DNA from: Marsupella aquatica
Taxonomy: Eukaryota > Plantae > Marchantiophyta
Length of the DNA stretch: 64,000 bases
Reading direction: 5' to 3'
NCBI GenBank assembly: GCA_973895155.1
Contig: OZ316897.1
Span: 4,310,211-4,374,210 of the forward strand
In this document: one piece after another, positions 4,580-57,204 of the stretch
How positions within the stretch are numbered: position 1 is the stretch's first letter
Layout: each line of letters opens with the position of its first letter
Program-made: the position numbers and the translations under genes
Notes under the pieces: generated by a model
What the model saw: the letters and a program-made list of their open reading frames with translations, nothing else
Told to the model about the DNA's origin: nothing
Databases searched by the model: none

Positions 4580-5407
4580 AAAGCAGCCGCTCGGTTGCTG
4601 CTGCGTTTTTCCCCGGTTTTCCCCGTGGTACCCCCCGCGCCTCGGTTCACGCCCTTGCAGGCAGCCGGCGGCCCCTCACAGCTGCCCCTTCCCTTTGTGC
4701 CCCGCCCTCCCTCTTTATGTTACTCCGTGCGCGACCGGACTCCTTGCCTGTCGCTCTGACCTTGCCGCTCCCCCTCGCAACGTTTCCTTCCCTTTTCGGC
4801 CTCGTATGCTCCTGTATACTATGCGCGTACCCTGTACCTTGCCTGACCTGCCTCGCGTATGCGCATTTTTTGAGCGTATTTTTTGCTAAGGGGCATTTGG
4901 ACCCCCTTTAGGGCCCTATTTTAAGCTGTTTTTCCTTCTCCTTAGTTTTTCCTTTGTGCCGGGACCTGCCGCCCTCCATTTTAACCGCTCCGACAGGGGG
5001 AACGGCCCCCTGTGAGACCTGTCAGATTGTGCGGGAATATTCCCAAAAAACAGAGAGCTGTTTTTCGGCCGTCCGACAAAGATTTTGTCCGCCAAACGGT
5101 AACTTTTTTGGTTCTTTTTTGGTGAGGACGTTGCCACTGGAGTTAGCAACGCAGCGCACCGATCACATCGCAATTCTGACGACGGGTTGTACTGGGTATT
5201 TTGGTTATTCTCTGAGGTGGTCAAAATGGGAGAGTTTCCCAAGGTTTTACCCACCTCGACCAAAATTTGAATAACTTTTCCGTCAAATTTTTATTTTTAT
5301 TTTGGCTTTAAGTATTGGACTCCTAGCTTCGTGGGCTACACGGTGGTGTTGAGTTTTGAGTTTTGTGAGAAGTTTCGAAAAAAGACGTTTTTTCGTGATT
5401 GTTTCAT

Positions 5408-8400
5408 ATGAGTGACTCGGAGGATACTGGAAGAATTGGCATCAATGGAGCTTCAGGATCGCGACGGTCAGACGGAGAGTCTGAGGAGGAGCTGCTACCG
5501 TTTGAGGAAGAACTAGTGACACCGGTACAATCACCGGTGCGACGTGCAGTGGAGGAAGCTGTGTTACTACCAGAGCTGTCGGTAGTAGGGAAGAAGAGGG
5601 AGATGGCTAGATTTGGAGGAGTGAAGTTTGAGGTGGAGAAGTACGATGGTCGTACTGATTACTTGCTCTGGGAGAAGCAAGTGAAGGGTGTTCTACGGGC
5701 CATGGGCTTAGCTCATCTGCTTTCATCGCGAGAGTAGTATGATGGAGAGGAGGAGATTTTTGTGAGACAGTGGAGACAGGAGCAGGTGATTGCTGTCAAT
5801 GCAGTGATGCTATATCTCAAGCCGCACATCATCAAGCAGCTGGATAATTATGCGGATTGCGCGTCACTATTCAAGGCTCTAAGAGAGAAGTACTACTGGG
5901 AAGATGCGTCAGACCAGCTTTACAAGAAGTCTCTCTTGATGAACCTCAGGCTCAAGGAAGGGAGCAAGATGCAGGATCACCTGGATGAGTTTGACAGTCT
6001 AGCGGTGGATCTATCAAACCTGGGAAAAGGAGTTGAAGATGAGGATAAGGCCTTGCTTCTGCTAAGCTCCTTACTGCCGTCATATCAGGGCTTGAAACAG
6101 GTGCTCTTGTATAGAGATCTGAAGTTTATTTTGTATAATGAGGTGGTGAGCTCTTTACTGTCTTATGATGCTCAGAAGAAGCTGGGTCAATCACAGATAG
6201 CATCTTCTTCTGGCACTGCGCTCAATGTGAACAAGGGAAGAGCAGCGCAGCGCTCGAATGGGCAGAATAGGTTTAGATCTACATCATGGGGGAGATCTAA
6301 ATCCAGAGGGAAATCGCAAGAGAGGAAGCCTCTTGCATGTTGGAATTGTGGCAAGCCTGGCCACATGAAAAGGGATTGTCAAATAAAGGTCCCTACTGCC
6401 TCTGCTAACGCGGCATCGAGCTCGCATGAGGTAGATTTTCTTGATGATGATGACATATCGTGATGTCAAGGTTACGCTCTCAACGTAGTGTCAAATCCAG
6501 GTAGTGATGACTGGATTCTAGATAGTGCATGTACTTTTCACATTTGCTCTAGGAGAGATTGTTTCAATTCTTACACGGTTTCCAACGGGTCAGTGTTGAT
6601 GGGAAATGAAATCCCATGTCAAGTTGTTGGACTTGGATCTATAAGATTTCAGATATTTGATGGTGCTGTGAGAACGTTGAGGAATGTGAGACATATTCCC
6701 AGCATGATGAAAAATCTCATTTCACTTGGAGTTTTAGAAGCAAATGGCCATCAGTGGAGTTCTGCTAATGGTGTCCTTTAGGTTTCAACTGGTATTAAAG
6801 TTGTATTGAAGGGAAAGAGACATTGCAATATGTACGTTTTGGAGGGCAGTGTAGTTTGTGATGAAGCCAATGTAACCTTATCTCATGAGGAGACGGCCCG
6901 GCTATGGCACTTCCGTGTGGGCCACATGAGTGAAAAAGGTTTGGTTATTCTTCAGAAGAAATGATTACTTTCTAATTTGCAATCTTGTAAGTTGGAATTT
7001 TGTGAGCACTGTGTGCTAGGGAAGCAGCACAGGAAACCCTTCGGAGTTGGAACTCACACCAGCAAGGAGGTACTTGAGTATGTACATAGTGATGTGTGGG
7101 GTCCAGCCCCTACTCCCTCACATTCTGGACGGTTATACTATGTCACGTTCATAGACGATTACTCAAGGTATGTGTGGATATATTTTCTACACAATAAGTC
7201 TGATGTTTTTGCCACTTTTAAGGAGTGGAAAGCCCAAGTAGAGAATCAGACTGGTAATAAGGTGAGATATCTTCGATCGGATAACGGCGGTGAATACAAT
7301 TCCGGGGAATTTGGAACGTATTGTAAGGAGCAGGGGATTACCCGCCATCTCACAACAAGTTATACTCCTCAATAGAATGGTATTTCTAAGAGACTCAACC
7401 GAACACTATTGGACCGCTCAAGGAGTATGTTGAGTCAATCATGTTTATCACATGAGTTTTGGGCTAAAGCTGTCAACACTATAGCTTATTTGGTAAATTT
7501 TGTTCCATCCAATTCTATTGGATTCAAGACGCCATTTGAAATGAGGTACGGGCGTCCAGTAGATTACTCACATCTGAGGATTTTTGGATGTGATGCTTAT
7601 GTGCTTACACCTTCCCAGCTTCGATCCAAGCTGGAGTCCAAGTCGAAGAAGTGCATTTTCCTTGGCTATCAGAAAAGTGTGAAGGGTTATAGGTTATGGG
7701 ATCCAGTAACCTGTAAACTAATTGTCAGTAGAGATGTGTCCTTTAATGAATCCAGATCATCAAAAGAGGGGGAGAGTTCTCAGGACTCCCATACTGACAT
7801 GGGGAAATCTCCCATCCCGGATTGGATTGAGGGGGAGATTAGTCATGATGCTGTTCATGACAGGAGAGATGGAGAAGCTCCGGGCTTGGAGCTGGTTCCT
7901 GTGATGGAACAAGAGGAGCAGATTGTTGCTGGGGTACCTCAAATTCAACCACCAGCAGCAGCAGATCAGTCTGAGTCATCTACTAGAAGAACTTTCAGTC
8001 ATTCTACTAGAGCTCCTACCAGGTATGGTCAATGGGCAGACTCATCTAAGCTAGATGATATTGACATTGCACCTGATGATGATGACATGGCTTTAATCTT
8101 GGAAGAAGGAGAGCCTTCTTTGTACAGTGAGGCTTGTGCTTCAGAGCAGAAGCATGAGTGGAATGCAGCAATGCAGAGAGAATTGCAATCTTTGAGTGAC
8201 AACAAGATATGGGAGCTGGTGGAGCTTCCAAGAGGTCAGCCAATGGTGGACAGCAAGTGGATTTACAAGTTGAAGGACAGTCCTTCAGAGGGTGGAGATA
8301 AGATCTACAAGGCAAGGCTTGTTGCCAAGGGATTCACTCAGGAGAAAGGAGTGGATTACAATGAGGTCTTTTCACCGGTGGCTAAGTATTCCACAATTCG

Positions 8401-9697
8401 GATCTTGTGTCAACTTGTTGTGTTTTTTGGTCTGGTGATGAATCAGATGGATGTTGTTACTGCTTTTCTCTATGGAAACTTGGAAGAGTTGATCTTCATG
8501 AGACAACCACTAGGCTTTATGAAGAAGAGCCAAGAGAACTTAGTTTGCAGATTGCTGAAGTCCTTGTATGGATTGAAGCAATCTCCCAGACAGTGGAACA
8601 AGCGGTTTGATGATTTCATGCTTGCTCAAAGTTTTACAAGGATGATGTATGATCCTTGTGTGTATACAAAATCAGTCAAGAATGATGTGTTTGGTTTCAT
8701 CATTCTGGTTATTTATGTGGATGACATGATGATTGTGGCTAAAGATCAATCTGAGGTTGACAGTCTCAAGGCAAAATTGAGTGCTGAATTCAGGATGAAG
8801 GATCTTGGTAAGGCCAAGAGGATCTTAGGGATGGAGATTTTTAGGAACTCTGATACTGGACAATTGTGCTTGAGTCAAGGCCAGTATGCAAGGAAAATAC
8901 TTGCACGATTCAACATGGAAAACTGTAAGCCAGTGAGTATTCCTTTAGCTTCACATTTCAAGTTATCATCGGCTTTCTCTCCTACGGATGCTGTGGAGAA
9001 AGGTCTGATGGCTAAGATTCCTTATGAGAATTGAAGGCAGTAGGCAGTCTGATGTATTTGATGACTTGTACTAGGCCTGACTTGGCCCTAGCGATGGGCA
9101 AGGTTAGCAGATTCATGTCAAATCCAGGGAAGGTACATTGAATTGGGAAGCTGTGAAGTGGATTCTCAGGTATCTGAAGGGAACACAGGACTATGGATTA
9201 CTATTTGATAACAGATCAGATAGAACGTTAGTTGGCTATGTAGATTCTGACTATGGAGGCTGTCTAGATACAAGGAGGTCTACAACTGGTTTTGTATACA
9301 CTCTTGGAGGAGGATGTATCAGTTAGAAATCTACCTTGCAGAAGTGCATATCTCAGTCTACTACAGAAGCAGAGTATGTTGCAGCAGCAGAAGCAGCAAA
9401 GGAAGCAATTTGGTTGGATAAGTTGATCGCGGAGATGGATTTAGAGCATGGAAAAATGACTCTAAACTGTGATAGTCAGAGTACTCTTCACTTGGCTGCT
9501 AACCAGGTGATGGATAGCAGGGTGAAGCACATTGATATCAGGTACCATTTTATCAGGCAAGCAGTGTCTGATAAAACTTTTGAGCTAGTCAAGATTGATG
9601 GAAAGCTCAAATGAATCCCACTGATGCCTTTACCAAAGTGATTCCTTTGGAGAGTTTCTCAAGACACCGTGCTACTTTGCAGGTTTTGCAATTGTAG
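5408..9697 (+). pseudogene. Copia gag-pol polyprotein, disrupted by stops and frameshifts
   Basis: Zinc knuckle CWNCGKPGHMKRDC; protease WILDSACTFH; integrase HSDVWGP and RSDNGGEY; RT YKARLVAKG and YVDDMMI; RNase H GYVDSDYGG and KHIDIRYHFIR. Premature stops at about 5735, 6461, 6779, 7373 and 9324; frameshifts at about 9032, 9139 and 9611. Confidence 0.95.
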
Positions 9698-11550: not shown

Positions 11551-12565
11551 CCCAAAGAAATATTGATCTGAAGGGGATGAGCAAGACAGGAAACAGTCAC
11601 TGGAATTCAATTATATAATGTCTTCAAGGTTCCAAGCTGTACTGAAGAAGCGTTGACGAGCTCTCCAGGGTTACCGCATAGGAAAGGTGGCACCGTCGAC
11701 ACATTGCTGAGCTAATTACTGTGTTCTGACTCCCACGCTTCGTATGTTCCAAACTGAAGTCGCTCGATCATGTCGGCAGCTGGATGAATTGAATCTGAGT
11801 CATGAAGCTCGATTGGCAATGTTGTGCACTGAACGTACTGACGCACAACTTGACCTTAGACTGCTGCATTACCTCTACATCATCTGACTGGCGGACTTTG
11901 ATTTTGGTTTCTCAGTCTCTTGCAACTGCGCAAGTGAGTCAATTCTCACCTACCTCCATATTTATTTCTTCCGGAATTTGAATGAAAACATAGTTTAGCC
12001 ATTGGAGCTCGATCTCAGAACAACTCCCTTAATTGAATAGAATGTTTCCAGACCTGCAAAATCAGAATCACTTCCAGCCTTCTAAGCTAAGCCATGGGCG
12101 TTCTCGTGCCAGTTTTCTGTACGTTGTCAGGGCAGTACAGTACCTCGTTGGAATTGGCCTTCGTTTCTCAGAGTACTAGCTTTGGTAGAATTCCTCCGGA
12201 TAGAACAGACTAAGCCGCTCTCATAACATACTTCAATTTTCTAACCTCGTAGTTGTCTTCTTTGTGTTGGTACTCTCGTATCAGATATTGCTCATTTGAT
12301 TAGACAATGACCATCAGATCAATCAATTGCGCAATGGCAATCCTAGAGGCAAAGTTTCACTATTCAATTGTCAAGGAACGCAGGTTGCTATGGTATGTTA
12401 CTGTGTTGTAGCTGCGATCGAGTGGTTCATATATGTTTCGATCCATTGATTGATTGTAGGACGACAACTGCTCGTGCTCATCCGTGAGCAAGAACTATTC
12501 ACGACGTCCTGGCGTTAGTGTGCGATCTCCCCGATTTACTTTGTGGGCGGCCGCTTAAAGTGAGG

Positions 12566-15500
12566 ATGCAGCTCCACCGTAGCAAAAACGGTGGGTGCCT
12601 GGAGATGACTCATGTGAAGGTGGTAGCGAGCTTCTGTGCCGCCACGGCTCTAGCTCTACTCCTCTTCTTGTCCTTAGATCTCGCCAGCGGCCCCTGTGGT
12701 CAACAAAGTGGCCTCTACAGCTTTCGTGAGTCTCTCTACCTCTCTTCTATCAAAGAGTCGCTTAGCACCGCTCCATTCGAAGAGCGCAGAAATGCGAGCG
12801 GAATTACGTGTGCCACCTCCCAGGCTGTGCAAACAACGGGAGAAGTGTGTTACAGGGAGTGGGAGAAGCCATCCGTGACCAACGAGAGGGAATGGGAGAA
12901 GTTTTGGGACGAGAACACTCCGGAGTTGCAGAGAACATTCTCCCCGGTGGGTGTCTCCGCCTTCTTGTTCATCCAATTCGGAGCCTACCGAGGCAGCCCC
13001 AACAATTTCTCGATCGTTGGACTCTCCCCGAAGGCACTTCACATCTATGGCAATCCAGGATACGAGTGCTTCTGGATTCCAAAATCTGGAGATCCCATCA
13101 AAGGAAATGCGACCGGATACCTCCCAGGGATCAAGTATGCCAACCAGTACGTAGGCACAGTGATCCATTGCCAATTCGACCAGGATGTAGGCACAGCTGC
13201 GACTGGGGGAAGCTTAGAAATCGTGGCCAACATGGGATCAGATGACATGACCGGGCTCCCGGGCGCACAGTTCGTGGCACTCACAGAAGACCCGGGTGAA
13301 TACGATGGATCTCTCTTCGAGCAACCCCTGAAGTATGATTTCATGTATTGTGGATCACCTCTCTATGGACCGATTAGCCCACAGAGGGTAAGGGAGTGGA
13401 TCGCTTGGCATGCAAGGATTTTCGGTCCTCGGTCCCATTTCATTTTATACGATGGTGGGGGACTGCACGATGATGTGAGGAAGGTTCTCGCTCCGTGGGT
13501 GAAGCTGGGGAGAGTGACGATCATGAATTATCGGCAGGAGTCGAGATATGACTCGCATTACCATAGTCAGGCGGTGGTGTTGAACGATTGTCTGATGCAG
13601 GCCAAGAGGGTTGCGGAGTGGGCTTTCTACTTCGACATCGATGAGTACTTGTATGTGCCTCCGGATTTGAGCTTGGCCAAGGTTATGCGGGAGATAAAAG
13701 AGGAACAGGGACGGAAAGCCCAGCAGGTCACATTCGACCAGCGGCCCATGAATCGCAACCACTGCATCAAGAGGCCCCAGAATGACTCCGACGAGAGGTT
13801 TCAGAGGTACATTGTCTTGAGCTCATTCCCTCTCACACTTGAAACGACCAGCTCTTGCATTGTCATCAACGCATTCAATTTTAGTGATTCAAAGCTCTAA
13901 CAGTCGCATGAGCTCGAGAAATTATAGCCGCTTCGCAGCTCTTCTCTCAAATAGAATTTGATCGTGGGTTTCTATTCACCTGGGGTTTATGTCGGCATGA
14001 GAGGAATAATTCATTAAGGATGAAAGGCAGTCTGGAGGCTAATCAATGCATTGATTAGCCCGTGCGATTAGTGGGTTATGCAACTATTAGGTGTGCGATT
14101 AGTGGGGTACCCAACTATTAGGTGAAACACTATGGATGAGGTGTCATGCTACGTAATAGAGCTGGTAGGGCAGATCTCAGATGAGGTCCTGGGATAGAAT
14201 CCTGCTTGTAACTCTCTTAACACGCATTTACCCCAAAGTGTGGTACAGACAAAGCTTTTAAGACTTTAAGAAAACTGATGTTTTCCAGGCGGACAGAGGG
14301 GGCCGTGGGGAGTGAGTGCTCGAAGCTCTTTAACTGCCTTTCGTCCTGAATGAGCTTCAATTTCCTAGAAAATAATTTTTTGCCCAAAGCCAGCCGACGA
14401 TAAGATCTATATTACATTTGAGAATATGTCAAGAAAGGTTTATAATAATCATAGGGGAACCTTGGATTAGCTGATAATTGAGCAGGAACCGAACAGAAAA
14501 GGTACTTTTTCAAAAATTGTTCACCAAATTGTTCACCAATAACATTGAAGGTTACTAGTAATGTACATTTAGAATCATTTTGGTGTAAAGCTCAAGAAAT
14601 AATTAGACCTTAAAATTGAGAATTTCCATGTCACTTGTCAAATGTCCCTTTATGATGGAGACCTCGAAAAAATGATTTGATATACAGGTTTACACTAGTA
14701 ATTCAAGCTTCAGGACCGCTGCAGGTGAGTTGGAGCTGTGGAATAGTCGAAAAGTTGAATCGTTGAGTTGAACTTGTGAACACTAACGTTGCAGACAGAC
14801 TAAGACCTGAAATAGATCAATCCATTCAATGCGCGCTGAGGTGTGCGTGAAGAATCACGTTCAATGTGAGCTATCAGCAATAATTCCCGGAATCAAACCT
14901 AGATCGAACAATTCTCCTCAGGAATCCATACTAGTACAGTCGCGAGTATGAATTTCTTCTGCGCATTTACCTTTCACGGTGGAACTCGAATACATTTTCA
15001 CCACGAAATCGACGCAAGGCTCGTCCTTCACGTCACACCACTTTTGGGCAGTACCTTTGAAAGTTTCCGACATATTTCCGGTCCAACTCTTCTATACAGA
15101 CCCCGTTTTGATCATATGCTTAGCGGGTAAGCTCCTGCTTAAGTAAATTCTTCCCTATAGTGGCCACACTCGAACTTCCGCGTGGCAATCTCTTCTTACT
15201 AACTAGACTCAAAGAATTGGGCCGGCTGAAATGTTTTGGCTAGTGATAATCTTTAGGCTTCAAGGTTCGCTTGTCTTTCAATTTCTACTTGCACGTCTTT
15301 TAACCTACGGAACCCTTAAGTATGCAGCTAGCGTCAATGTTACTAAAAATTGTGGTCTACCCTAGCTCAAAATTGCTGTTCATCTAGGAATACTGTGAGA
15401 GAAGTTCGAAACCAATCTTCATACTTCTTGGTATGACCAATTTCATTCTGATGTTTTGCGGTTTATGGCAACAACAGCAATCTAGTGTAATGTAACGCAC

Positions 15501-34510: not shown

Positions 34511-36019
34511 TTATAAGCCAAAGACTCTATCGAGCTTAATGATATCCCTCGACCATACTGTAGTCAAGCGATAAATAGCATCCTCTATACTGGTGAAGTC
34601 CAAACCGGATCCAGTTAGGGTATCCCGAAAATATTTGGAGGACGATATAGTTTCAGCTACCACTGCATCTAGGTAGGCGCGCTCTCTCTCGCTCAACCGA
34701 TGCATCCTTGAATGCTCCCCGAAGTCACAGTGTAAATCGGATCGCTGTAGTCTAGCAAGCTCTTCCTCAAGAGTCTCAAGGGCCCCTGTTCGCAACTCTT
34801 CATATTCTCTCTCAATCTCCTCGTCGTCATCAATCGGAAGAAATTCTGCGGTCAGAAAGCTGCAGCAGCCTTCGAAATTTGTCTGTAGATGGGAAAGATT
34901 TTCATCAAGCCACCTGCTGTCCGCATTGGAAATTACAATACTGAAATTGTGACCAATTTTCTCTCCGAAAAGTAGCTTGAAAAATCTCCATAGGGTGACC
35001 TCCAATTCATCTATTCGGTCTTTCCTCAGAACAAAAAGATAGTGGGAGAATGTTCCTTCCTCCCACTTCACAAAGTTTTTCACCTTGTGTTGCGCCTCAT
35101 CTGTTGTTACGGTGCTACATTCAGCTTCAGGCTCTCCGAAGCCAGGAGTGTCGACCACATACCATCCTCTCCCTTCCCCATATTCAATTTGTCTCGTTCC
35201 ACCCCTGATACTTGAACTGGCCTTGAACTTTTTAGCATTCCGATCAAGCTTTCCAGATGTAAGCATTTGAGCAAGAGTGGACTTTCCACTCCCTGTCCTC
35301 CCAAACAAGAAGACTCGTTCGGGACCCCAGGGCCCAAACCTGAAAGCTGGCGACGCTTCTCCAAAAAAAAAAGGTATGCCGCAAGTAGTTGGCTTCCTAG
35401 TTGAAAGCTCGCTGTTGACGGTGGTAATTTTGTCCCTCAGACAAAAGGTGCTGCACATCTTCCGAATACTGACTTCAACCAGCGTCCTCGCCTCATCATC
35501 CGCGAGACCATCGGTCGCATTGAAGATGAACACATTCTTATACCTGAGCTTATGTCTCCGCACACAATTTTCAACCCGATACTGCAATTTGGTCTCCGAT
35601 CCATTGCCCTCCGTAACAGCAAGTATCATTATGTCTCTATCCTTTCCAAAAATCAGGCCGAAGACATCAAACCAACAACTGTAGTTGGTGAAAAGAACTG
35701 TGTTACACGGCTCCTCTACCAAAGCGTACGTGACCACACACACAACAAATACTATCTTCCCGAAAATAATTTTCCTCAGAGAATTTTGCGATATCCATCG
35801 CCTTGCAATTGCGGTTGCGCTCTTACCCTGGACGTTGCGCAAAGGTGTCGTGTCAACAACTCGAGCTTCCGATTTGTTCGTGAGGATTTGAACCCCAGCG
35901 CCTGTCACGTATCTGCTCCAAGTTCCTGAGTTTGTGAGAGAATCCACGACGCGAGTCTTTTCTTCTTGAACATTCCCCACGACCAAGATGACCACGTCTT
36001 TCGCATCAGCGTCAGCCAT
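34511..36019 (-). CDS. Intronless AIG1/IAN-like TRAFAC GTPase with a degenerate N-terminal G domain and an intact C-terminal G domain
   Basis: 502-aa ORF. C-terminal domain has G1 FLFGRTGSGKST, G2 T and G3 VVDTPGFGE. N-terminal domain has VILVVGNVQEEKT and VVDTTPL in the same order. A short coiled-coil segment lies near the C-terminus. Confidence 0.85.
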   Translation of the reverse strand: MADADAKDVVILVVGNVQEEKTRVVDSLTNSGTWSRYVTGAGVQILTNKSEARVVDTTPLRNVQGKSATAIARRWISQNSLRKIIFGKIVFVVCVVTYALVEEPCNTVLFTNYSCWFDVFGLIFGKDRDIMILAVTEGNGSETKLQYRVENCVRRHKLRYKNVFIFNATDGLADDEARTLVEVSIRKMCSTFCLRDKITTVNSELSTRKPTTCGIPFFFGEASPAFRFGPWGPERVFLFGRTGSGKSTLAQMLTSGKLDRNAKKFKASSSIRGGTRQIEYGEGRGWYVVDTPGFGEPEAECSTVTTDEAQHKVKNFVKWEEGTFSHYLFVLRKDRIDELEVTLWRFFKLLFGEKIGHNFSIVISNADSRWLDENLSHLQTNFEGCCSFLTAEFLPIDDDEEIEREYEELRTGALETLEEELARLQRSDLHCDFGEHSRMHRLSERERAYLDAVVAETISSSKYFRDTLTGSGLDFTSIEDAIYRLTTVWSRDIIKLDRVFGL

Positions 36020-52700: not shown

Positions 52701-54680
52701 GATAGGGAAGCTTCGATCGGATCTTTCAGGTATATCAATCGAACGATTACATCTGAGGCAGCAATCCCTCACTTCCTGTAACTGATAAAGTAAATGTAGG
52801 GCCCGTACTTCATTCTTCGACTGTAACTCTCACCCTGAAGAGCGACGAGCCTGGTGAAGAGCACTGCAAACGGGAGCGATCTGAGGCGTCCAACCGAACT
52901 CAGTTAGCCAGGCCATTACGGTAATGGATCACGTGTACATGTAGAACAAAACTTTACATTAAGACGAGACAATCATGGGCATTACATTGGGATTGTTTTA
53001 GATCGATCATTGATCAGTTGAATCGAAGGAACTTGTTGACATAATTCACCGTAGAGTTCGAAGTAAGAAGGGGACGGTTTGTTGAGAATGAAGGTTAACT
53101 TGATGGAACACCCGGCATTTCGATCTCCGTCTACAATTTGTGTGCATGCACACGACGAGTGGGGTCATCCAGGTGCTTCAGGGCACTTGAAGACTGTCAG
53201 AAGCTCAATGGTCGTGGCATGTCTGCAAGCAAAACCCGGCCGGGTTGTGAGTGGGTTGGGTGTCGATATCGTAAGAATGTATGTCGAATACTGCCGGGAA
53301 TACTGCAAGAGGTCATCCACACAGCTTTCGACTCGACCCTATCACATTCACAACGAGGACTTGGACTGAATTGAGCCTTGTTAATTTGATTCAAAATGGT
53401 TTCGTCAGCAAATCTTTCTTTCCTTGGTGGTACGACACCGGCTAATAATTTACGTCGATTCCGACAATGAGCGTTCAATGCAGACAGTTTGACTTACTAT
53501 ACTCTCAATTTCCCCGCTGCACGAAAGTCTGAATCAGTGAACTAATGTGAATGGCAGCTTTCGCTATAAAATCACAAATTGTGTGCAGCACGTGCCTGGA
53601 GTAGCGTCGAGATCTAAGTTTATACAATTGCGTTGTCTAACTTTGGTATTACCCGCATACTTCACCAGATAAGCATCTTTTTGTGAAGAATACAGCACAG
53701 CTGATAATATACAAAGCTTGCGAATCAATTATAGGGCAAATCGTCAAAACAGCTGCGGCTTCATCCATGCATTGCCTTTCCGTCTAGGTCTTTGATCGTC
53801 GATAATTGAAGCCAGAGCGAGACAGGTGAAACGAAAGCCAGTGAGGAGACAACGAGGTTGAAATGGACAACCTATAAATGCACAATCAGAAACGTACTCA
53901 TCAACGTTGCGAAAGTCAGACAACAAAAATTGTCCAGCCAGTTGAAGGGTTAATTCCGAAGTAGGGAGAGATGGGTTGCGGCGGATGGCGCGCGGGCCTC
54001 TTTGGGCTTTCCACAACCGGGTAAGCGAACTGCTATAGGAAAGCTTTTCCCTTAAGATGTCTACACCCTCCAGAATGTGTAGCTTCCAGTCCATCGATAG
54101 AATCGTCAAACGATTCTTCTTCGCGTTGATAGCCCTAAGAAACTTTGTCTTGGCTCGAATCATCACTTCTGTCATGACTTGAATCCGACGTACCGATTCT
54201 AAAATATTGACAGAAACTATTAACGAAAGATAACTCAATCAAGTAACACGACGCAATTTATTTCCCAATTCCACAATTCGTGCGGTCAAGTAAAGAAAGT
54301 AGCACAATGTCTACAATTTATTTTCTGCTAGCTTCACAGACGTTGCAGAAGCACGTGTCCTTGCACTGAACTAAAATGGGAACCTCTCGAACAGCTACTT
54401 ACGAATCGATCAGCTACATACGAATCGATCAAAACACGTCGAACTCGAGTCCATCAGGATGCCATTGCCAAATCTAATTATACCTTCGGGGTGTAGCGCC
54501 GCAGAAAGAGATCCAGCATAGCCACATGCAGTCCCCCACAATCATAATGAATCTGGCCTCTGGTCATTATCCTGCATCTAGCTGGACAATTGCGAACTAT
54601 CGAACGTCGGGAAGGTGATGTCTCAACGTAGCCATTCTGCAGAGTGCTCAAACATTCGTCCAGTCCATTGACAGTCTGCC

Positions 54681-55739
54681 TCAAACTGTTGGTGCTCGAT
54701 GCACGAAGTCAGCCCAAGTTTTAGGAACGTAATCTTGGTCTGAAGCATGCGGCGGAGAGAAGTTGTTCGGTCCACTGGGAACCGCCCTCAGGCTGCTGGA
54801 AGCATGGGGTTGCTGCATTCTCTCAGCCGAAGTTGTAGGAACGTATTCTTGGGCTAAAGCATGCGGCGGAGAGAAGTTGTTCGGTCCACTGGGAACCAGC
54901 CTCAGGCTTCCGGAACCATGGGGCTTCTGCACTCTCTCAGCCGAAGTTGTGGGAACGTCATCATCGGCTGAAGCATGTGGCGGAGAAAAGTTGTTCGGTC
55001 CACTGGGAACCAGCCTCAGGCTTCCGGAACCATGGGGTTTCTGCACATTCTCAGGCGAAGTTGTAAATACGTCATCTTGGGCTGAAGCATGCGGCGGAGA
55101 AAAGTTGTTCGGTCCACTGGGAACCAGCCTCAAGCTGCCGGAACCATGGAGCTGCTGCACTCTCTCAGCCGAAGTTGTAGGAACGTCATCTTGGGCTGAA
55201 GCATGCGGGGGAGAAAAGTTGTTCGGTCCACTGGGAACCAGCCTCAAGCTGCCGGAACCATGGGGCTTCTGCACTCTCTCAGCCGAAGTTGTAGAAACGT
55301 CATCTTGGGCTGAAGCATGCGGCGGAGAAAAGTTGTTCGGTCCACTGGGAACCAGCCTCAAGCTGCCGGAACCATGGAGCTGCTGCACTCTCTCAGCCGA
55401 AGTTGTAGAAACGTCATCTTGCGCTGAGGCATGCGGCGGAGAAAAGTTGTTCGGTCCACTGGGAACGAGCCTCAGGCTGCCGGAGCCATGGGGCTGCTGC
55501 ACTCTCTCAGCCCAAGTTGTAGGAACGTCATCTTGGGCTGAAGCATGCGGCGGAGAAAAGTTGTTCGGTCCACTCGGAACCAGCCTCAGGCTACTCGAAG
55601 CATGAGGCGGAAATGTGTTCGGTCCACTCGGAACCAGCCACAGGCTGCTCGAATCAACCGGAAGAAGCCTTGCAGAGCTCACAACAGTGCAGAGCAACAG
55701 AAAGCTCAACACTGTCGACAATCTGCCACAGAAACCCAT
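54681..55739 (-). CDS. Secreted multi-repeat CLE/SGP-like peptide precursor (9 peptide domains)
   Basis: 352-aa intronless ORF with signal peptide MGFCGRLSTVLSFLLLCTVVSSA|RLLP. Contains 7x RLVPSGPNNFSPPH, 1x RAVPSGPNNFSPPH and 1x WLVPSGPNTFPPH, in a 38-aa (114-bp) period. Confidence 0.88.
   Translation of the reverse strand: MGFCGRLSTVLSFLLLCTVVSSARLLPVDSSSLWLVPSGPNTFPPHASSSLRLVPSGPNNFSPPHASAQDDVPTTWAERVQQPHGSGSLRLVPSGPNNFSPPHASAQDDVSTTSAERVQQLHGSGSLRLVPSGPNNFSPPHASAQDDVSTTSAERVQKPHGSGSLRLVPSGPNNFSPPHASAQDDVPTTSAERVQQLHGSGSLRLVPSGPNNFSPPHASAQDDVFTTSPENVQKPHGSGSLRLVPSGPNNFSPPHASADDDVPTTSAERVQKPHGSGSLRLVPSGPNNFSPPHALAQEYVPTTSAERMQQPHASSSLRAVPSGPNNFSPPHASDQDYVPKTWADFVHRAPTV
54700..55650. repeat. 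Coding tandem repeat, 114-bp unit x8
   Basis: TTGTTCGGTCCACT at 54763, 54877, 54991, 55105, 55219, 55333, 55447 and 55561. Confidence 0.97.
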
Positions 55740-57204
55740 GGTGGCCAGCGACTACGTACTGATCGACGGGAAATCTAGAGGAGATTGAGGACAAAGAAAC
55801 ACTGAGAATCTAGAGGAGATTGAGGACGGCCTCCTGAAGAAATATGACAGGAGAAGCCCCGTGACGAAAATGCGTCCACATGGAATAGAAACTTCAACAG
55901 GCTTAAAAGGTTTTTATGTAAAGAGGGAGGGGCCTCGGGGAGGAAAAATAAGGCTTCCTCACCAAGCAAGTTTTCTGACTTTTAGTTAGCGTCACTAATC
56001 GGCTGATTAGACAGATTAATAGCCTTTATTTATTAGTAAGAGCATTCCTAGTGGTCGGCCAACATGGCCCGGAGGATAAATCAGAGGTTCAGCCAACAAT
56101 GACCCAAACATGAAACCCCACCAGAGCTGTTTGTGGGGGCAGTAGCCCAGGCTTGATGACCCAAACATCAAACCCCACCAGGCCTGCTTGTGGGCCCAGC
56201 CTTTTTGACACTCGCAATTGGCAGTCTTGTGCTCAGGAGCCGACCCAACAAAGCCCTGGAAATGGGTCTGATAGGGTGTCTAAAATATAATTAAACCCCT
56301 TTTGCTCTTCCACGGGAAAGGGCCAGAGCCCATAATGTGGCCTGCGGGTGAGTTTGAATTTTCACAACACTAGTGTGCAGGCTAGGCTAGTTATATAGGG
56401 AGGGCCATACAATTATTTTCTTGCCCATCCCTTTGAACTTAAATCCAAACTGCACTGAGACTGCCCACTGGCTAAATTTGAGATCCCCTAATGGTGCTGA
56501 ATTATCAAATTGGTGCCATTTGACAACTCTGGTTGGAGTATCTTTGGGCCTGCGCTCTCATAGTAGTGTATACAGGCACAATTTTTAAGGTTTTCTCATT
56601 TTGCTGAGGATGCTGAAAGTCACCTCATTTGAAAGAGAAAATGCTAAGAATATTCCTTAACCCACAGCTGCACCTATAAACCCTAAAACCCTACCCCTAG
56701 CTCTCATTGTATATAATTGCACAAGTTCAGTTTTATTATGAATGGACTTGAGCTCCACAAAAGGTGTTAGAGTGTTACACCTTTTAGAATGAGTAGTGAA
56801 ACATGAAATGGGGCTTTTATAAAGGTAAGTGTGATTTAACAAATATTCCTAGATTAATTTCTGATTGTGAGAATTAAGGATATATTATCATCAGATTGTG
56901 GCACAAGAGAGAGGGAAGGGGCAAGATCTTATCTCAGATCCCTCACTTTGGCATCTTTCCCTTAGCTCAACATCTTTCATTTCAACATCTTTTCTTTGTT
57001 TCAACATATTGTTCTTTTCTCAACATCTTGCCTTCATCTTAAAAAAAATTATACAACGCATGTTTTCTTTGTTTAAACATATTGTTCTTTTCTCAACATC
57101 TTGCCCTCATCTTAAAAAAATTTACACAACACAGGGATAGGGCTGGTAGATTATATATTTTTTTAAATTTGACAATTTGATGTACAATTCCCGATAAATC
57201 TCGA

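Follow-up and report, generated by a model that had tools for sequence, protein, structure and literature searches.

A gene for a probable nine-module secreted precursor of peptides with a CLE-like head and a divergent tail in the liverwort Marsupella aquatica

Liverworts provide a minimal model for CLAVATA signalling, in which the C-terminal residues of CLE peptides are thought to anchor the ligand in its receptor. The locus described here lies in a stretch of 64,000 nucleotides from Marsupella aquatica (the window) and encodes a repetitive protein whose repeated module begins like a CLE peptide, while its tail breaks with these C-terminal residues. The question is whether this gene specifies a precursor of many CLE-derived peptides, a member of a separate ligand family, a structural protein, or no functional product at all.

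Gene structure and selection within the repeat array

A complete open reading frame on the minus strand (54681-55739) encodes 352 amino acids plus a stop codon and starts with an ATG in the context GCCACCATGG. The N-terminus, MGFCGR, contributes Arg6 and is followed by a hydrophobic core of 14 residues (7-20) and by SSA|R with small residues at positions -3 to -1; residues 4-21 were modeled as a helix in a single-sequence AlphaFold run. By inspection and hydropathy, by which the signal peptide was called, the protein is predicted to have the N-terminal secretory signal peptide that characterizes CLE precursors, in agreement with the initial annotation. The features of the gene are as follows.

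54681-55739, minus strand: open reading frame of the pre-pro-protein with nine peptide modules, intronless (ORF list and translation)
55671-55739, minus strand: signal-peptide-like N-terminus, residues 1-23 (hydropathy, AF2 helix 4-21, sequence context)
55602-55640, minus strand: module 1, WLVPSGPNTFPPH, with SSSL ahead (translation)
55545-55586, minus strand: module 2, RLVPSGPNNFSPPH (translation)
55431-55472, minus strand: module 3, peptide as in module 2 (translation)
55317-55358, minus strand: module 4, peptide as in module 2 (translation)
55203-55244, minus strand: module 5, peptide as in module 2 (translation)
55089-55130, minus strand: module 6, peptide as in module 2 (translation)
54975-55016, minus strand: module 7, peptide as in module 2 (translation)
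54861-54902, minus strand: module 8, peptide as in module 2 (translation)
54747-54788, minus strand: module 9, RAVPSGPNNFSPPH (translation)
54684-54746, minus strand: non-repeated C-terminal tail, residues 332-352 (translation)
54709-55592, no strand: tandem repeat array, 114 bp, 7.8 copies, 91% matches (Tandem Repeats Finder)
55910-55920, minus strand: putative TATA-like element TACATAAAAAC, 171-181 nt upstream of the ATG (sequence)
55772-55827, no strand: identical pair of 21-nt direct repeats separated by 35 nt, leader/promoter region (repeat search)

The modules start at residues 34, 52, 90, 128, 166, 204, 242, 280 and 318, so that the nine copies originally reported, seven of them identical, were recovered in the translation. 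The identical 14-mers (RLVPSGPNNFSPPH) are modules 2-8, whereas module 1 is a divergent 13-mer (WLVPSGPNTFPPH) with Trp in place of Arg and one residue short, and module 9 (RAVPSGPNNFSPPH) carries Ala instead of Leu2. The module period is 38 amino acids, and the spacers measure 24 amino acids with the exception of that between modules 1 and 2, which comprises five.

Since a tandem repeat holds reading frames open for free, the length of the frame is no argument for coding; the argument comes instead from the pattern of differences between the units. Among the seven full units, the 14 codons of the module show five silent and no replacement variants (CTG/CTC, CCC/CCG, TTT/TTC, CCG/CCC and CCG/CCA), so that the changes, first described as mostly silent, are silent at every variable site. 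In the 18 codons of the spacer core, five silent variants are accompanied by 14 replacements (Fisher p=0.006 for module versus spacer core), and in the six codons of the pre-site HGSGSL three by two. Accordingly, pairwise pN/pS is 0.00 in the module, 0.95 in the spacer core and 0.17 in the pre-site, which speaks against equal divergence of modules and spacers and upholds the proposal that the module, and not the spacer, is conserved. The synonymous measure pS lies at 0.12-0.16 across the units (0.28 in the short pre-site), and this similar silent divergence everywhere indicates that the units are more than merely young copies. The longest run free of replacements spans 17 codons, from S-2 and L-1 through R1 to A15; when the 16 replacements were placed at random, a run of this length appeared in 0.15% of trials (p=0.0015). 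Purifying selection is confined to S-2, L-1 and R1 to A15, and the spacers are near-neutral.

The opposite strand holds an open reading frame of 280 amino acids (54763-55605, plus strand) that is open since the 114-bp unit contains no stops in this frame; lacking an ATG, a signal peptide and relatives, it was rejected as a coding frame. In the antisense frame with coinciding third codon positions the silent and replacement counts are the same as in the sense frame. The test is therefore blind between the two frames, and the sense strand was assigned from its ATG and signal peptide and from the homologues.

Relation of the module to CLE and other peptide families

Residues 1-8 of the module, RLVPSGPN, are identical to those listed in PMC5538625 for AtCLE9/10 and CLE13 and conform to the CLE pattern R/H-x-V/I-P-x-G-P-N/D. 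Positions 9-12 depart from the rule: all 16 peptides of that listing have Pro9 and end in Asn or His (P-L/I-H/S-N/H), while the module reads N-F-S-P, followed by P-H-A. The CLE head and non-CLE tail of the initial annotation are thus both borne out, as is the conserved site ahead of the Arg, which reads S-x-S-L|R with Leu at position -1 in all modules. If N-F-S is regarded as a three-residue insertion, the end of the module would align as P-P-H-A with P-L-H-N, and that of the mango module (see below), with an insertion of two residues, as P-H-A. At E<=10, neither the whole protein nor residues 1-103 nor a single module matched a family in the Pfam copy searched, which may or may not include the CLE_plant profile PF27922. 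A language-model search with residues 1-103 placed CLE_plant clusters nearest among those with a name, at 0.83-0.84 and thus below the reliability mark of 0.9, and the whole protein came near nematode multi-CLE and CEP9-precursor clusters at 0.76; both results serve as leads only.

With R-type CLEs (AtCLE9/10, RLVPSGPNPLHN; CLE13; MpCLE2, KEVPNGPNPLHN) the gene shares residues 1-8 (those of AtCLE9/10/13), a secreted precursor, as predicted here, and a conserved flank, Leu or otherwise, ahead of Arg1. It differs from them in the tail, in a conserved block that is longer by two to three residues, in being multi-copy rather than single-copy, and in the absence of Asn or His at the anchoring position of canonical CLEs. 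As far as the Marchantia listing in Furumizu et al. (PMC8462819) extends, it comprises the single-domain MpCLE1 and MpCLE2, one R-type and one H-type, and none of the MpCLE1, MpCLE2 and MpIDA1-type peptides in its table matches the module.

Precursors with several CLE domains have been described as OsCLE75/OsCLE76, TaCLE30/31 and MtCLE68 (Oelkers et al. 2008, PMC2254619), and a role in signal amplification was proposed for them (PMC2254619). Like these proteins, which have a signal peptide and two to six motifs in one exon, about 27-37 amino acids apart with similar spacers (six motifs about 36 amino acids apart in rice CLE75; PMC2254619), the liverwort gene combines a predicted signal peptide with repeated motifs in a single exon and similar spacers; with nine motifs at a period of 38 amino acids it agrees with a definition that asks for at least two motifs in one exon at spacings of ~30-40 amino acids. 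Some of the known precursors also have non-canonical ends or extensions, such as the rice CLE76 motif ending in ...GPDPITSDPPP and the wheat TaCLE31 extension ...PIHHRPPH (PMC2254619). Unlike them, the gene has nine motifs, reads N-F-S-P at positions 9-12 and then P-H-A, and resides in a liverwort, a group in which the Marchantia CLEs listed in PMC8462819 are single-domain only. Since multi-CLE precursors from rice, wheat and Medicago have been published (PMC2254619), repetition is not new, and the amplification by intragenic repeats that was initially proposed is a design known from OsCLE75/76, TaCLE30/31, MtCLE68 and also CEP9, which has five CEP motifs (PMC4526919). The new part is the tail, whose strings were absent from the paper texts searched.

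CEP and PIP/PIPL peptides, which have been reported only from seed plants (PMC4526919), resemble the module as Pro/Ser/Gly-rich peptides of 13-15 residues ending in His, and several of their precursors contain more than one motif. However, the module lacks the SPG[IV]GH or GxGH end and has the core S-G-P-N instead of SGPS; with its tail S-P-P-H-A it falls outside both definitions (PMC4526919). The simplest reading of the module is, judged from its sequence, a divergent CLE domain with two to three extra residues before a P-x-H-x end. The suggestion of a new SGP-superfamily ligand is compatible with the module, but the divergent CLE domain is the simpler account.

Relatives in mango and a metagenome

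When 1.84 billion representative proteins were searched in full with HMMER, 11 hits resulted and, among them, one true relative, the mango protein XP_044467152.1 (LOC123197037), named 'uncharacterized' at NCBI. Its 145 amino acids comprise a signal peptide as well as three modules, which are all preceded by Met-Leu. The hits P0001, P0002, P0004 and P0006-P0011 were rejected as unrelated Ser/Pro-rich repeat proteins. A word-index search with residues 1-103 added P0012, a protein of 104 amino acids from an ENA metagenome; besides a signal peptide it contains two modules, both after Ser-Leu, in which the head recurs and the tail reads S-P-D-S-P-P. Together, these searches of very large databases provided one relative from mango and one metagenome protein and none from a liverwort proteome. 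Among the 8000 candidates of a word-index search with the whole protein none reached E<=0.01, the mango protein matched only itself in such a search, and an exact look-up of the 352-residue protein and of two neighbouring ORFs found no match in the collection; the missing self-hits imply that the proteins of this genome are not contained in the collections searched. A scan of JGI metagenomes with the alignment gave 17 pattern matches, none of which was confirmed, the 39 loci of a DNA pattern scan were all chance matches without a CLE-like continuation, and no second CLE-like module was found in the 64-kb window.

A further hit, P0003 (ENA metagenome ERZ26695794), has 275 amino acids with at least eight repeats of 18 amino acids, FSPHGSGQWRQLVSG(A/E)DG. 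With F-S-P-H and small residues followed by R-x-L-V-S-G, it loosely mirrors the short unit that separates modules 1 and 2; however, the prolines of that unit are missing and the start is membrane-anchor-like, and its relation to the module gene is uncertain.

The mango locus on CM021850.1 contains three tandem genes within 10.7 kb with 13 modules of the form RLVP[ST]GPNP[GE]SPHAA. By reading of the locus (L001, CM021850.1) the genes are located as follows.

5001-5671: mango gene 1
6942-7400: mango gene 2
10259-end: mango gene 3, extending past the region read

In gene 1 the frame shifts between modules 3 and 4, a break that the annotated model bridges as an intron. The intact open reading frame of gene 2 encodes 152 amino acids with four identical modules, and its product is missing from the collection. 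LOC123197037 and its two unannotated neighbours are similar to the liverwort gene in the signal peptide, four to five modules each, Leu|Arg, the RLVP[ST]GPN head, an S-P-H-A-A tail, a period of 39 (or 26) amino acids and selection on the module, and differ from it in the retention of Pro9 and in a linker of two residues instead of three. Across the 13 mango modules, the block of 15 codons shows eight silent and two replacement variants, the latter at position 5 or 10, as compared to three silent and nine replacement variants in the 11 codons ahead of the module; Leu-1 is invariant across three different codons. The mango modules are, likewise and independently, under purifying selection.

A Leu precedes the module in 24 of 24 modules from the three sources (liverwort, mango and P0012), this Leu closes a Gly-rich stretch in every unit, and the repeat periods are 38, 39 and 41 amino acids, respectively. 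Liverwort and mango further share H-A-x-x-Q-D/E after the module, with Ala15 invariant in 9/9 and 13/13 modules. The tails read NFSPPHA in the liverwort, PGSPHAA in mango and QQHSPDSPPA in P0012; any homology between liverwort and mango tails is based on few residues, and the likeness could be due to convergence.

These similarities allow for a reading in which the module belongs not to a recent CLE derivative, but to an old family sister to CLE with its own receptor, present in liverworts and angiosperms and always multi-copy, whose signature would be the head R-L-V-P-S-G-P-N, a linker of two to seven residues and a tail S-P-(P)-(H)-A. The similar periods of liverwort and mango (38 and 39 amino acids), Leu-1, S-P...H-A, the Q-D/E after the module, the Gly-rich pre-site, the comparable 41-amino acid unit of P0012, albeit with a tail without His, and the lack of the tail strings in the literature searched point in this direction. 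However, there are only three sources, and their tails differ in length and residues. Moreover, grass multi-CLE proteins have extensions of the PPH/PPA type after canonical motifs (PMC2254619), and such tails can, thus, arise inside CLE. We therefore regard a separate family of this kind as unlikely. It is similarly doubtful, from the sequences compared, that an ancient and always multi-copy family with an S-P-(P)-H-A tail, release at Leu|Arg and a receptor specificity of its own extends from liverworts to flowering plants; if so, it would represent a new branch in the small set of land-plant-wide peptide-receptor pairs.

Proposed processing and remaining alternatives

We consider it probable that the liverwort gene encodes a CLE-derived multi-peptide precursor that would be cut at Leu|Arg and trimmed at its C-terminus. 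The protein would enter the secretory pathway, where the signal peptide is predicted to be removed after SSA23. As in CLE biology, the prolines, especially those of the S-P-P tail and P4/P7, may be hydroxylated and possibly arabinosylated. N-glycosylation is doubtful, since Pro comes directly after the N-F-S sequon, which module 1 lacks. A subtilase-type endopeptidase might then read the conserved flank of five to six residues and cut at the invariant Leu|Arg, followed by cleavage or trimming of the C-terminus at His14 or Ala15. Similarly, a flank of five residues is critical for N-terminal cleavage of CLV3, the C-terminus of which is trimmed by a carboxypeptidase (reviewed in PMC13082318). 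A cut after the His, as originally claimed, is not established, since Ala15 is as invariant as His14 in both liverwort and mango and the conserved block extends from L-1 to A15. In this way, one polypeptide could give rise to up to nine peptides of 13-15 residues, seven of them identical, which may be recognized by a subfamily-XI LRR receptor kinase, either of the CLV1/BAM type or another. Mature CLE peptides, for comparison, comprise 12-13 residues with hydroxylated and arabinosylated prolines and are perceived by receptors of the CLV1/BAM/PXY type. As a third, nine-copy, CLE-derived liverwort gene, the locus could point to a receptor that recognizes another C-terminus; it could also illustrate new ligand specificities budding off CLE and serve as a natural system for the cutting of multi-peptide precursors, for which the mango cluster is a second, independent test bed.

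It might alternatively be argued that the locus is silent or decaying, i.e. a former CLE gene whose 3' part has expanded as a minisatellite and whose open frame is not expressed. None of the sequencing runs that contain the stretch is recorded as RNA, the two best-matching runs have an even depth across the flanks, as expected for genomic DNA, and the annotated liverwort proteomes searched yielded no orthologue; in addition, tandem repeats trivially hold frames open, as is also seen in the antisense frame of 280 amino acids. However, the units have diverged (pS about 0.13-0.16), and yet 17 codons are free of replacements while the spacers contain many; the ATG, its context, the signal peptide and the stop codon are all intact, and mango independently displays the same pattern of selection. 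A silent locus is, thus, quite unlikely in our view, and in that case the gene would serve only to illustrate clearly how selection leaves its footprint within a tandem array.

In run X5 (organism C), a single contig of 151 nt, made up of 55671-55764 and 54423-54479, links position 55764 to 54423 head-to-tail, giving a period of 1342 bp; this span corresponds exactly to the gene with its leader and trailer, and fully fitting X5 contigs occur only inside it. The junction could stem from a tandem duplication or amplification in the strain, from a circular molecule, or from a template-switch artefact at a short similarity. Downstream of the gene, a 19-nt tandem pair (54387-54424) resembles the leader directly ahead of the ATG, at 55750-55768 (CTAC-A/G-TAC...GATCGA), and may be the remnant of an adjoining gene copy.

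Extensins are recognized by SP3-5 runs together with Tyr cross-link motifs, and arabinogalactan proteins by at least ~50% Pro, Ala, Ser and Thr with dense A-P/S-P/T-P dipeptides. A repetitive (glyco)protein that is secreted and functions as a whole, for instance as a hydroxyproline-rich component of wall, mucilage or adhesion with the repeats as structural units, could account for the 44% Pro, Ala, Ser and Thr, the eight S-P-P motifs and the eight N-F-S sequons of the mature part and for the regular beta-repeat in one of five AlphaFold models (pLDDT 65). This explanation is improbable, as the near-neutral spacer core (pN/pS 0.95), which makes up about half of each unit, fits poorly with a folded or uniformly structural repeat, the composition argues against it (no SPPP(P) run, no Cys, two Tyr, ten [AST]P dipeptides in 329 residues, and a Pro/Ala/Ser/Thr share below that usual for arabinogalactan proteins), the conserved block matches a hormone motif, and the other four models score 29-43. 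The alignment-free fold, with one model moderate and the others low, was set aside as uninformative beyond the helix of the signal peptide.

Elsewhere in the window, copia-type gag and reverse-transcriptase ORFs (5762-9034), an ORF for a GT92-family glycosyltransferase (12518-13900) and an intronless ORF for an AIG1-type GTPase (34511-36019) were identified. Close to the gene, two runs show a 5- to 15-fold rise in contig depth at 56775-56925, which reaches up to some 40-fold at individual sites and is accompanied by numerous variant contigs and loose ends, so that this segment looks like a high-copy dispersed repeat adjoining the gene. It is followed by a 73-nt tandem pair at 56986-57131.
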